Source of the DNA: Macrostomum hystrix
Lineage: Eukaryota; Animalia; Platyhelminthes
Length of the DNA: 64,000 bases
Assembly (NCBI GenBank): GCA_950097015.1
Contig: CATNEN010000025.1
Coordinates: forward strand, 9,176,001 to 9,240,000
Direction of reading: 5' to 3'
Shown one piece after another: positions 11,301-20,300 of this stretch; the stretch's first letter is position 1; each line of letters starts with the position of its first letter. A program made the translations under genes and the position numbers. The notes under the pieces were generated by a model. That model was given only the letters and a program-made list of their open reading frames with translations. It did not search any database and was not told where the DNA came from.

Positions 11301-14300
11301 TATCCTGTGTTATCTCTGTCTGTCTATCCTGTGTTATCTCCGTCTGTCTATCCTGTGTTATCTAACGAAAGCTATCCTGTGTTATCTCTGTCTGTCTATC
11401 CTGTGTTATACAACTTACGAGATACTCGTATTTTAGAAGACTCCAAGTGGATCTACAATTTAGAATGGGGCAAATGAAATCTAGCTTAAAGTGCCGTGAT
11501 TTTAAGTAATTCTACTTATCTAATCCAAACTCAACTTCCACTTTTAAATAATTAAAACGCTTTCTGGCTGTCAAACTAAATGAAATTCAGGCATTTCAAT
11601 CTAACGGCTTAGCGCCCAGCGGCCTAGCGGAAGGCGAGGCCAGCGAGTTGTTGCAAACGGTGCGAGCTCGCCTGCAGAACCTGCTGTGGAAGAGCGAGAA
11701 CAATGTCAAGGTGAGACTGCGTGACCGAATTGCGGTTCGGGATGGCCTGATTGCAGGACCAAACTGCAGTTGGGAATGGCCTGATTGCAGGACCAAACTG
11801 CAGTTGGGAATGGCCTGATTGAAGGACCAAACTGCAGTTGGGAATGGCCTGATTGCAGGACCAAACTGCAGTTGGGAATGGCCTGATTGCAGGACCAAAC
11901 TGCAGTTGGGATTGGCTTGATTGCAGGACCAAACTGCAGTTGGGAATGGCTTGACTGCAGGACCAAACTGCAGTTGGGATTGGCTTGATTGCAGGACCAA
12001 ACTGCAGTTGGGAATGGCCTGATTGCAGGACCAAACTGCAGTTGGGAATGGCTTGATTGCAGGACCAAACTGCAGTTGGGAATGGCCTGATTGCAGGACC
12101 AAACTGCAGTTGGGATTGGCTTGATTGCAGGACCAAACTGCAGTTGGGAATGGCTTGACTGCAGGACCAAACTGCAGTTGGGATTGGCTTGATTGCAGGA
12201 CCAAACTGCAGTTGGGAATGGCCTGATTGCAGGACCAAACTGCAGTTGGGAATGGCTTGACTGCAGGACCAAACTGCAGTTGGGATTGGCTTGATTGCAG
12301 GACCAAACTGCAGTTGGGAATGGCCGGATTGCAGGACCAAACTGCAGTTGGGAATGGCCTGATTGCAGGACCAAACTGCAGTTGGGAATGGCCGGATTGC
12401 AGGACCAAACTGCAGTTGGGATTGGCTTGATTGCAGGACCAAACTGCAGTTGGGAATGGCCTGATTGCAGGACCAAACTGCAGTTTGGAATGGCCTGATT
12501 GCAGGACCAAACTGCAGTTGGGAATGGACTGATTGCAGGACCAAACTGCAGTTGGGAATGGCCTGATTGCAGGACCAAACTGCAGTTGGGAATGGCCTGA
12601 TTGCAGGACCAAACTGCAGTTGGGAATGGCCTGATTGCAGGACCAAACTGCAGTTGGGAATGGCCTGATTGAAGGACCAAACTGCAGTTGGGAATGGCCT
12701 GATTGCAGGTCCAAACTGCAGTTGGGAATGGCCTGATGCAGGACTAAACTGCAGTTCGGAATGGCCTGATTGCAGGACCAAACTGCAGTTGGGAATGGCC
12801 TGATTGAAGGACCAAACTGCAGTTGGGAATGGCCTGATTGCAGGACCATAACATACCTAGATTTTACCATAAAACTTGAAGCCATAATTGGGATTGGGAA
12901 TTGCAGAATATTCGCATCCAGGCGGAGAAGTCGTTCGCGAGCTACTCGCCACAGAATTATTCGGTGAGTTGCTGCTTTCGTATTTAACTTCTTTCTGGCG
13001 TTTTGCTTTGCCTTCTTGATTCAGTTACCTTGTTGCAACCGTATTTGCCATTTGACCGTAATGCCTAAAAATATCGAATGTCAAAAGAGTAATGAGCAAG
13101 CTATGAATGACCATATAGGGAAAGATCGATCAACGTATGATCAGAAGGGTAATGATCGATCTATGTGTGACTAGACTGGTAATGATCGATCTATGCATGA
13201 CTAGAGTGGTAATGATCGATCTATGCATGACTAGAGTGGTAATGATCGATCTATGCATGACTAGAGTGGTAATGATCGATCTATGGATGACTAGAGTGGT
13301 AATGATCGATCTATGGATGACTAGAGTGGTAATGATCGATCTATGCATGACTAGAGTGGTAATGATCGATCTATGCATGACTAGAGTGGTAATGATCGAT
13401 CTATGGATGACTAGAGTGGTAATGATCGATCTATGGATGACTAGAGTCGTAATGCTCGATCTATGGATGACTAGAGTGGTAATGCTCGATCTATGGATGA
13501 CTAGAGTGGTAATGATCGATCTATGCATGACTAGAGTGGTAATGATCGATCTATGCATGACTAGAGTGGTAATGATCGATCTATGCATGACTAGAGTGGT
13601 AATGATCGATCTATGCATGACTAGAGTGGTAATGATCGATCTATGCATGACTAGAGTGGTAATGATCGATCTATGCATGACTAGAGTGGTAATGATCGAT
13701 CTATGGATGACTAGAGTGGTAATGATCGATCTATGGATGACTAGAGTGGTAATGATCGATCTATGGATGACTAGAGTGGTAATGATCGATCTGCATATGA
13801 TCAAAACGTTCAAAACGTAAAGTTTATTTTTACATAGGTAATGATCTTAATCTTAATGACCAGAAGTACAATGGTCGAACTATGAATGAATAGAAGGGTT
13901 TTGATGTATATTTGGCATGACCAGAGCAGTGTACCGTATTTTTCTGTTTTGCTACAGAATTTAGAAGGCTGGTTGATTTTTCTGAAAATTTCCGAACCGG
14001 CAAAAGTTTATGTAGCAGTTCGGTGGCTATTAAAAGTTCACTGAAGATCAATAACACAAAATGATTTATGTAAGCCTTTGACTTTGAAGTAGGCTCAAGT
14101 GATTGATGAATTGGCAATTCGATTGATGCCTTAAACTAACATTGAGAAATGATTACAATGTCTAGAGGATTACGGATATAATTTTGAGGAAGCAATGCGT
14201 CACTAAAACATTCAGAGCACATAGAAAACATAAGCGAAACCAAAAATACGAGCTTTCTAAAGGCTTACCAAAATCCAACGCTTCAAAAGGCTGTGTACAA

Positions 14301-17300: not shown

Positions 17301-20300
17301 TCCGGCGCCGCACAGAAGACCCAGATGGACTCGCATGGCAGCAGCTCGGCGCGCGGCGCCACGTTGCCGGCCTCGCCGGTTTCGCTCGCGTCGGCGCTCA
17401 ACTCGCCGGTGCGCGCTCCGCTGCCCCCGCTTTGTCCTGCCGCTGTTGGCCGCCGCAGCAGTTAAGCGCGGCTCACCGTCTTGACCACGAGGAGGTCGCG
17501 GCATTTATCTGCACCGATGTGCAAATAAGTTAAGACTGCAAATAAGTTAAGACTGCAAATAAGTTAAGACAAATTTGCATTTTACAACATAGTGAACTGA
17601 AGCGACATCGCAGCCACCTCCAAACTCACCTGTTCCAGTGCCCGGATTTCACAACTTTCCCCTACCTTCGAGCCGCCGCCATCGACAAGAAGGAGACGAC
17701 GGCGCACGGCGACGCCGCTTCGTCGATTCCCGCCCCCTCTGGGCAGCCGCCGTTGTACACAACTAGTTCAACAACCGCTCCGCCAGTTCCCACCGGCCCA
17801 GTGGACTACTGTGTTCAGCAGGCCACCCTTGAGTTGACGCCAGACCCAAGACTGTACGATGTTGAAACTAATCGACGGAATTCCACTTCGCATGTGCCGC
17901 CAAATATCTACGATTCTTGTGAGTACGGATGCTTGTGAGTACGGGTGCTTGTGAGTACGGATGCTTGTGAGTACGGATGCTTGTGAGTACGGATGCTTGT
18001 GAGTACGGATGCTTGTGAGTACGGGTGCTTGTGAGTACGGATGCTTGTGAGTACGGATGCTTGTGAGTACGGATGCTTGTGAGTACGGATGCTTGTGAGT
18101 ACGGAGAGTGTACGAATGTGGAGTGTGGACTCGCCAAAGAATCGAACTCGGGACCTTGGCATAATGTCAATTTAAAAAAATTAGAAGTGCTTGTCGAGTG
18201 CAATCACCTGATTTCTTGTCAGCCAACGAGATTTTAAACGTTGCAAACTGGACCAGCAGTCTGGACGATGTGTTCATCGCCAATGCGCAGTCTGACTCCA
18301 CGCTGAAGTGGCAGTACTTCGGCACCACCGAGGGTATGTTCAAGATCTACCCCGGCATCCAGTGGTATGTTCAGACTAAATTCTACACTAGAAAGGATGT
18401 GGACATGCCGATAGACATGTTTGATTGCAGGACCCAGTACTGGTGAGTTGTATGATCAATTCTGCTTCATTCGAATATGAACTAAAATTTAGGATGCAAT
18501 CACAACGATAGCGAAACCCCATCCAGGTATCTGCTAGCGGCCACCTACCCTAAAGACATGGTGATTCTGATTGATAATAGCGGATCCATGAAGGGCAGAG
18601 GATCGATAATGGCTAACAAGACTCTGACTGAGATTCTGCACACTCTCAATGTTAACGACTTCTTCAATGTTGTCATGGTGAGTTGGCTTAGTTCAGCTTT
18701 GAGCACAACTCAAAGGTGCTGCATGTTTGGTGAATGACAAATCAATGATAAAAGTGAAGGACTTGTATTAGACTAAATCGTGTGATTTCGCTGACTCCTG
18801 TGCACACACTCACACAGGTGTGTACATCTGCCCTGACTTTCTGATCGTCAGGCAGGGTACATTTTCACAGTGCCTTGGAGATTGGCCCTCAGGGCTTAAA
18901 TTGCTCGACAAGCCGCCTTAAGTATTCTCTCCGCGGCTGCGCCCCAGATGAACTTGGCCTAGCTGAGGAATCGAGCTCAGGGACCTTACCCCCGAGTGGA
19001 ATGACTTAGTAGGTCATCCTAAATTCGTATTACAGTTCATGAACATGTCCGTCAAGTACATCTCGGAAGCCTTCAATCGCACCATGCTGCAAGCAACGGA
19101 GATGAACAAAAATGTGAGTTATTGATGCTTATTTAATATTTATAATAAGAAACTAGCATTTTTACTATAAGTAGTATAATCAAGAACTTAGTTATAACTT
19201 TACAGAAAGTGATGGAGCTGATCAGCCAGGACGAGGAGAAGAACCCGGCCGTGCGGCAGTTCTCACCGCAGGGCGTGTCAGATTTTCACCTGGCTCTGGT
19301 TGAAGCCTTCGAGCTGCTGCGCCTGGCTAAAAACCAATCAGCTAGTGGCTCGTCCGGTGGAGTGCAGACTATCATGCTCATCACGGACAGTGCGCCGGAG
19401 GAGTTTGTTGACGTCTTTCAGAAGTACAATCCGGATGTAAGCCGGAGATGCTTAACGTTGTGATTAGGTTGGTAGGGTTTGGGGTGGTGGGTTAGGGGTT
19501 GGTGGGTTAGGGAGTGGGTTAGGGAGTGGTGGGTTAGGGGATGGTGGGTTAGGGAGTGGTGGGTTAGGGGATGGTGGGTTTGGTAATGTGGGTTTGGGGG
19601 TGGGTTAGGGGGTGGGTTAGGGGGTGGGTTAGGGGATGGTGGGTCAGGGGATGGTGGGTTTGGGAATGTGGTTTAGGGGGTGGTGGGTTTGGTAATGTGG
19701 GTTATGGGGTGGTTTAGGGGGTGGTGGGTTTGGTAATTTGGGTTAGGGGGTGGTTTAGGGGGTGGGTTAGGGGATGGTGGGTCAGGGGATGGTGGGTCAG
19801 GGGATGGTGGGTCAGGGGATGGTGGGTTTGGGAATGTGGGTTAGGGGGTGGTGGGTTTAGAGGGTAGTCGGTTTGGGGTTGGTGGGAATGTGTCGCTCAC
19901 CCCGAATAGCCGGGGAACCTGGGCCAATCCGGTGCGAGGGAGTTAAAAGAAACAGCTTTCCCACTAAAACATTGAGGATTTAAATTTTCTATCCCCACCC
20001 CTGAAACCGCTAACTATCTGAAACAGCGTCAGATCCGTCTGTTCACCTTTCTGATTGGGCAAGAGGCCACAGATGAGGACACGGTGAAGGCCATGTCCTG
20101 CAACAATCGGGGCTACTTTGTACAAATTGCCACCCTGGCCGACGTCAAGGAGAACGTCCAGGTAAGAAGGCATCAATTTCATGAAAAACTGAGACTAAAC
20201 TACTACTAGTAGATTGCATCGGATGTGTGCTTTTGCCACACTGATAATTTAGTAAATTTAAACTGCTATGACAAATTTTTCGATGCGTGAACCATTGTGT

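Follow-up and report, generated by a model that had tools for sequence, protein, structure and literature searches.

A predicted HDV-like ribozyme with a tandemly repeated P1 strand at the 5' end of an RTE-type retrotransposon of the flatworm Macrostomum hystrix

Ribozymes resembling that of hepatitis delta virus (HDV) are established at the 5' ends of RTE, baggins, R2, and L1Tc elements, where two roles have been proposed for them in the life of these long interspersed nuclear elements (LINEs), namely, freeing the co-transcribed element RNA and promoting its translation (PMC6765202, PMC3774820, PMC3185411). Their P1 helix is usually 6 to 7 bp (PMC4908430) or about 7 nucleotides (nt) (PMC3774820) long, and in the mosquito RTE ribozyme drz-Agam-2-1, a stable helix within the joining segment J1/2 (P1.2) unites P1 and P2 and speeds cleavage up to about a thousand-fold (PMC4908430). 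How promoterless LINEs define and protect their 5' ends is only partly understood. Here, we describe a candidate of this class in a 64,000-nt stretch of the Macrostomum hystrix genome (GenBank assembly GCA_950097015.1, contig CATNEN010000025.1, forward-strand positions 9,176,001 to 9,240,000; here the window, whose coordinates are used throughout). The candidate occupies positions 17536 to 17438 of the minus strand, at the 5' end of an RTE-type element. Judging from its fold and its conservation, we consider it probable that a working HDV-like ribozyme trims the element RNA to the first G of a 17-nt tandem unit. Free-living flatworms would thereby be added to the known hosts of RTE elements with HDV-like ribozymes.

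Fold and conservation of the ribozyme candidate

Read 5' to 3', the minus strand contains every part of a nested double pseudoknot, arranged as P1, J1/2, P2, P3, L3, P3', P1', P1.1, P4, J4/2, P2' (Table 1). A pseudoknot-free minimum free energy (MFE) fold recovers the J1/2 hairpin, P2, P3, and P4 (-43.1 kcal/mol, z = -3.2). The motif shares with the HDV-like class its topology, two C-G pairs in P1.1, an unpaired C in J4/2 together with C-A-A, and a 7-nt L3 with U, C, C, and a 3' G.

Comparison of related copies supports these helices. Twenty-odd copies of the element 5' end split into two subfamilies, A and B, whose P1 strands are GUCUU/AAGAC and GACUU/AAGUC, respectively. In 16 of these copies, standard pairs fill 94.7% of cells, versus 31 to 52% when the 3' partners are slid by one to three columns. 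Five pairs are altered on both sides, three of them in the J1/2 hairpin, and the second pair of P1 is U-A in eight copies and A-U in seven. A covariance model built without P1 and P1.1 identified 59 sites in the genome, more distant families included. All of the inspected sites sit at the 5' edge of a 17- to 18-nt tandem array, and those with sufficient downstream sequence (families A to E) run into a long open reading frame (ORF). Contigs of two other assemblies that encode related proteins share this arrangement of array, ribozyme, and ORF.

We compared ten lineages, eight from this genome and two from other assemblies. Their helices were read by script; a model-fitted alignment, which sets families E, F, and G out of register at their 5' ends, was not used for P1. 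A 5-mer complementary to P1' is located 32 to 35 nt upstream of P2 and recurs at each unit further upstream. Beyond the A and B pairings, P1 and P1' are GUGUU/AACAC in C, GUUCU/UGAAC in D (one U-U mismatch), UUUCU/AGAAA in a variant of D, GAGCC/GGCUC in both E and F, GUUGC/UCAAC in G (4 bp), GUGCC/GGCAC in H, and GUCUU/UGGAC in I (4 bp, one G-U wobble). Cognate strands pair at 47 of 50 positions, compared with a mean of 2.8 of 5 for non-cognate strands, and none of 20,000 permutations matched the observed total. Pairs 2 to 5 each occur as two or three Watson-Crick types. The sixth position is an A. In most lineages, it faces C, G, or A, and only in F and H does it pair with U; P1 is thus best read as a helix of 5 bp (6 in F and H) with a conserved, usually unpaired A after it.

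The other helices also change on both sides. P2 reads UGCUGA/UCAGCA in E, UGUCGA/UCGGCA in F, and GUUGGC/GCCAAC in I, and its seventh pair, set off by a conserved bulged base, is G-C in some lineages and C-G in others. P3 occurs as ACC/GGU, GCC/GGC, and GUC/GAC, and the stem of the J1/2 hairpin is wholly different in sequence in family G. Invariant in the ten lineages are the U-C-C...G of L3, the CC/GG of P1.1, and the P4 stem sequence. Covariation therefore speaks neither for nor against P1.1, and P4, whose loop length depends on the family, shows no two-sided changes. The C directly after the (N)G that follows P4 does not vary among the nine lineages for which the parse was in the correct register; in the other (L082), the automatic parse was one base off and the J4/2 C was recovered by re-reading by hand.

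An earlier note on this DNA, made from the sequence alone, had proposed the complete fold, the 10-bp hairpin in J1/2, a single bulged A in P2, and C17449 as the catalytic candidate, with covariation among genomic copies as a check. That check bears the proposal out: matched changes maintain P1, P2, P3, and the hairpin, the bulged base recurs between alternating pairs, and the C is both invariant and aligned to the consensus C of the drz-agam-1 family (see below). Its P1 of "5 bp plus an A-C pair" keeps the 5 bp and loses the A-C pair, and P3 is best read as 3 bp. The A-C pair and a fourth P3 pair were both rejected because sister families do not keep them: in family B, the A of the sixth P1 pair faces G, as does the G of the fourth P3 pair (G17497-C17483). 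An 8-nt P1 (GUCUUAAC with GUCAAGAC) was also rejected; it would abolish P3 and is absent from family B.

Some features of the fold vary between copies. The loop AUCG of the J1/2 hairpin reflects a change private to this copy (window position 17518), nearly all family A copies carrying the stable UUCG tetraloop. L3 is UCCNNGU in families A and B, and in families C to I, it holds a covarying helix of 21 to 49 nt directly after UCC(N). This helix begins GG../..CC and lies 1 to 2 nt before P3', and its stem sequence is family specific. Family G (L066-L079, e.g., L069:151-286) has many near-identical copies even though its P1 is of only 4 bp (GUUG/CAAC).

Database searches place the candidate near a known family. 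At gathering thresholds, Rfam gave no match in the window. In E-value mode, the drz-agam-1 model (RF01787) aligned to 17513-17440 (27.9 bits, E = 0.0012), P3 and L3 agreeing with the consensus and the consensus J4/2 C falling on C17449. The best score among the sister families was 22.9 bits, for a family B copy. No member reaches the gathering score, and standard Rfam annotation misses the whole ribozyme group. A descriptor of the fold, which was composed after the site was known and speaks to the rarity of such a combination, matched once on the two strands of the window, at this site, and in none of 200 dinucleotide shuffles. The descriptor search that the earlier note had suggested as a check was thus answered in part, with a unique custom match and a sub-threshold Rfam match. 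We classify the site as a putative HDV-like ribozyme that lies outside drz-agam-1, as the Rfam threshold was missed.

Table 1. Coordinates of the predicted ribozyme, the tandem units, and the host element in the 64-kb window (sister loci carry their own coordinates)
Feature	Position	Strand	Remarks
P1 5' strand GUCUU, proximal unit	17536-17532	minus	pairs with AAGAC 17482-17478
A6		minus	directly 3' of GUCUU; conserved, mostly unpaired
J1/2 hairpin, 10 bp	17528-17519 with 17514-17505	minus	loop AUCG; J1/2 is 27 nt; in MFE fold
P2 5' strand UGCCGCG	17503-17497	minus	UGCCGC 17503-17498 pairs with GCGGCA 17443-17438
P2 seventh pair	G17497-C17445	minus	spans bulged A17444
P2 3' strand GCGGCA	17443-17438	minus	
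P3 ACC/GGU, 3 bp	17496-17494 with 17486-17484	minus	
L3 UCCUCGU	17493-17487	minus	
P1.1	CC 17492-17491 with GG 17477-17476	minus	
Unpaired C, then P1 3' strand AAGAC	C17483; 17482-17478	minus	
UGA		minus	between P1.1 GG and P4
P4 hairpin GCCGCG/UGCGGC	17472-17467 with 17457-17452	minus	9-nt loop
J4/2	17451-17444	minus	GG, C17449 (candidate catalytic C), C-A-A, C17445, bulged A17444
Sister loci with L3 helix	L048:1501-1628, L056:1501-1638, L063:151-291, L064:151-282, L069:151-286, L081:14-160, L082:127-260		
Three tandem 17-nt units GUCUUAACUUAUUUGCA	17570-17554, 17553-17537, 17536-17520	minus	Tandem Repeats Finder: period 17, 3.0 copies, 100% matches
RTE-type element, ~3.2 kb	17570-14337	minus	
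Single ORF, 1038 aa	17504-14388	minus	apurinic/apyrimidinic (AP)-type endonuclease and reverse transcriptase; Pfam Exo_endo_phos 4.5e-11, RVT_1 1.3e-29
3' untranslated region (UTR), ~30 nt, and (UUG/UGU)n microsatellite tail	14387-14337	minus	tail is (TGT)n in DNA
5' target-site duplication GTTGTAAAATG	17588-17578	minus	7-11 bp
3' target-site duplication copy	14340-14330	minus	overlaps end of microsatellite tail
Extra bases CAAATTT	17577-17571	minus	between 5' duplication and first unit

Tandem units, candidate cut sites, and the coding start

The P1 5' strand belongs to a repeated unit. In each of the three units of this copy, the P1 5' strand GUCUU(A) is accompanied by the hairpin's 5' arm from J1/2. 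The unit spans from the cleavage-site G to the last 5'-arm base ahead of the loop-closing C17519, and as part of it, GUCUUA recurs at 17553 and 17570. Each lineage has its own version of the unit, whose first five bases always track that lineage's P1' and whose period is 17 nt (18 in E). The number of units per copy ranges from 1 to 31. A full-length sister that is 99% identical to this copy (G000:C38:808324-808615; L002, L025-L030, L032) has 18 units versus 3 here, and unit number therefore shifts fast between close copies. The motif UUGCAGUCU makes the unit junction of family A, and its retention in the family G unit may point to a second function.

The arrays begin in phase. About 22 of the 24 informative arrays start at the unit's G, with 0 to 3 chance-match bases ahead of it, where random phase would predict about a quarter; two arrays open with a clear partial unit of 8 to 9 nt. 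Such starts would be expected of retrotransposed RNA that began at the unit's G, that is, of the predicted cleavage product. Because the P1 strand belongs to the repeated unit, several cut sites are possible, and the bonds 5' of G17536, G17553, and G17570 could be equivalent. This copy begins at G17570, and its parent RNA therefore retained all three units. The bond 5' of G17536, which the earlier note had named as the cut site, thus stands as a candidate, although not as the only one.

Some bases ahead of the arrays show patterns of their own. The extra bases CAAATTT in this copy, read with the TG before them, match the unit's end (ATTTGCA) in reverse complement. Elsewhere, five copies (L037, L039, L040, L048, L052) have CA ahead of the first unit, a frequency above chance.

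A mechanism can be proposed. The element would be transcribed, possibly within a longer host transcript, and the nested double pseudoknot would form with P1 stacked on P1.1 and P4, and P2 on P3. The J1/2 hairpin would keep P1 beside P2, by analogy with P1.2 of drz-Agam-2-1. C17449 and an L3-bound Mg2+ ion would cleave the backbone immediately 5' of the first G of P1, any of the three candidate Gs being usable, and the element RNA would be left with a 5'-OH G. By comparison with the known LINE HDV-like ribozymes, which this site would resemble in its working, we infer catalysis, a choice of cut site, read-through transcription from which the element RNA would be released, and any aid to translation.

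The array itself may have a role, which we put forward tentatively. It may be a repeated substrate module of P1 strand and J1/2 5' arm, offering interchangeable cut sites to one core and buffering the element against 5' truncation by leaving an intact P1 strand further in. Regrowth would be possible through slip-back of the reverse transcriptase, the 17- to 18-nt period would be under selection in the ten lineages, and the core would tolerate the L3 helix in families C to I. As to how the arrays grow, our guess is that the reverse transcriptase slips on the repeated 5' end or that slippage takes place at the DNA level. The ten covarying lineages form a natural test set for the minimum length of P1, the choice among identical cut sites, and the tolerance of L3.

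The coding sequence appears to start inside the ribozyme. An AUG (A17504, U17503, G17502) overlaps the first two bases of P2, has an in-frame UAA just before it, and is found here, in frame with the long ORF, in families A to E. Families F and G have no AUG at this position and, as read by eye, carry an in-frame AUG within the L3 insertion instead. Related proteins of other assemblies (P0003, P0005, P0018, P0021) conserve a basic peptide encoded just past the ribozyme (17436-17337), and the methionine at 17336 is not conserved in them. For this reason, the ORF most likely starts at AUG 17504, and the ribozyme would therefore double as the first 22 codons, behind a 5' leader of 32 nt if the RNA is cut at the proximal unit. 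The earlier note had recognized this ATG within P2 and had suggested that translation might start downstream, at 17336; the first point agrees with our reading, and the downstream start was rejected on the evidence above. A start codon in P2 offers a compact case for the translation of uncapped, ribozyme-ended LINE RNA.

Several points weigh against a working ribozyme. P1 has 5 bp where the class usually has more, with four A-U among the five pairs, making a short, weak stem, and P1 mismatches or weakness have been tied to lost in vitro activity (PMC3774820). The drz-agam-1 score lies below the gathering score of 37 bits, and that model's own P1 strand is unmatched, because P1 here sits upstream of the J1/2 hairpin. 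The conservation of P4 is ambiguous, since the stem also lies within coding sequence, and copies with several units should not persist if cutting at the proximal unit is efficient. The weakness of P1 would suit an explanation in which the HDV-like fold is conserved for a mainly non-catalytic job, such as a cap-independent translation start or recognition by an element protein, with 5' ends set by initiation at CA/G unit junctions (the slash marks the junction) and the units serving as an internal promoter. The junctions are indeed initiator-like (..GCA/G.. in families A to D and F, ..ACA/G.. in E), and CA stands ahead of five among the roughly 22 in-phase arrays. There is also precedent, in that L1Tc has both an internal promoter and an HDV-like ribozyme within its first 77 nt (PMC3383444), and action like that of an internal ribosome entry site has been proposed for HDV-like ribozymes (PMC6765202). 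We nevertheless regard a non-catalytic main function as improbable. P1 covaries at four of its five pairs, and its only known role is to present the cut site. Neither the candidate catalytic C nor the L3 core varies, and the family G junction reads AAA/G rather than CA/G, yet P1' tracks the new first bases. Promoter activity and cleavage are, moreover, mutually compatible.

That the helices arose by chance, or from constraint on the N-terminal coding sequence with no functional RNA structure, is scarcely credible. The 3' two thirds of the motif is translated, and relatives share the peptide pieces GEP, AAA, and SG, but P1 and the J1/2 hairpin covary upstream of the start codon, and the compensatory changes in P2 and P3 alter amino acids. 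The empty result from the 200 shuffled windows and from the 20,000 P1 permutations argues against chance. A working ribozyme thus remains the preferred reading, and within it, not in competition with it, lies the question of which unit is cut. Cleavage may occur chiefly at a distal unit (17570 or 17553), with the upstream units pairing with the single J1/2 3' arm or lengthening J1/2. This copy opens exactly at G17570 with three units, other copies have 1 to 31 units in arrays that start in phase, and every unit holds both a P1 strand and a hairpin 5' arm. We consider distal cutting possible but the less probable alternative. A long unstructured J1/2 slows HDV-like ribozymes, and a stable J1/2 helix near P1 accelerates them (PMC4908430), so that the proximal unit would be kinetically favored. 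In the MFE fold of the three-unit RNA, it is the proximal unit that makes the hairpin, and the arrays could expand after cleavage through slippage of reverse transcriptase or of DNA replication.

The host element

By its architecture, the element is RTE-type. It combines a length of ~3.2 kb, a single ORF with an N-terminal AP endonuclease followed by a reverse transcriptase, and the lack of an ORF1 with a very short 3' UTR ending in a tandem repeat, target-site duplications, and frequent 5' truncation. Its copies in the genome comprise a single full-length one that is 99% identical, a few with 93 to 95% identity, and many that are 5' truncated, as is typical of a LINE active in the recent past. 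Among named proteins, the closest come from Macrostomum lignano (~65% identity) and are unclassified. None of the short Logan contigs of public runs, presumed to be RNA, bridged the element 5' end. The intact ORF, the target-site duplications, and 5' ends that coincide with the first nucleotide of P1 agree with the earlier assignment of the ribozyme to the 5' end of an intact element of RTE type.

Two further tandem repeats flank the element in the window. A 30-nt repeat (13148-13792; 21.5 copies, 98% matches) lies ~550 bp past its 3' end, and mirror-image ORFs of 227 aa on both strands of this stretch are an artifact of the repeat. A 16-nt repeat (17912-18105; 12 copies, 97% matches) precedes the 5' end by ~340 bp.

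Comparison with known systems

In the literature that we searched, we found no description of a helix in L3 of HDV-like ribozymes, of a repeated unit of P1 strand and hairpin arm with a conserved 17-nt period, or of a start codon within P2, a weak negative given that the primary RTE-ribozyme papers were outside the search. Literature searches on Macrostomum ribozymes and on HDV-like ribozymes with tandem repeats gave nothing relevant.

The antigenomic HDV ribozyme has the same P3 (ACC/GGU) and C-N-A-A in J4/2. Its L3 is UCCUCGC, one base off the UCCUCGU found here. It differs in belonging to a viral circular RNA processed by rolling circle, in its 7-bp GC-rich P1 and short J1/2, and in having no comparable coding overlap. 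An alternative register reported for its bottom P2 pair (PMC2175327) resembles the bulged pair here.

L1Tc of Trypanosoma cruzi offers a LINE whose first tens of nucleotides form an HDV-like ribozyme (Pr77/L1TcRz) with a second function (PMC3185411, PMC3383444). In L1Tc, the second function is an internal promoter, and there are no tandem units; here, it is the coding start, and a promoter role is speculative.

Among the Rfam families, drz-agam-1 shares with this site P3 ACC/GGU, L3 UCCUCGU, the GG of P1.1, and the positions of P2, P4, and the J4/2 C. In that model, the P1 strand comes directly before a 5-nt J1/2, whereas P1 here lies 27 nt further upstream, past the hairpin.

The mosquito RTE ribozymes (drz-Agam-2; Ruminski et al. 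2011, Webb et al. 2009) were compared through PMC6765202 and PMC4908430. Like the site described here, drz-Agam-2 lies at the 5' end of an RTE-type element without a recognized promoter and has a double pseudoknot with a stable J1/2 helix (P1.2), and release of the element RNA from co-transcripts has been proposed for it, as we suggest here. The flatworm site differs in its host, in a P1 of 5 rather than 6 to 7 bp, and in a P2 of about 7 rather than 12 bp. It also differs from drz-Agam-2, as described in these two papers, in the tandem repetition of the P1 strand with the 5' arm of P1.2 and in the start codon in P2, some of which the primary accounts may include.

R2 ribozymes resemble this site in their position at the element 5' end, in the core of P3, L3, and P1.1, and in a cut site set by the pairing of an upstream segment with P1' (PMC3774820). 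R2 belongs to another LINE clade with a restriction-like endonuclease and inserts site specifically, its P1 is about 7 nt, and the P1 strand often comes from the 28S gene. Some R2 5' junctions carry tandem duplications whose length equals the distance to the ribozyme cut site (Eickbush et al., PMC3774820). Those duplications derive from homology to the target; they are the nearest precedent that we found for the tandem arrays of the Macrostomum element.

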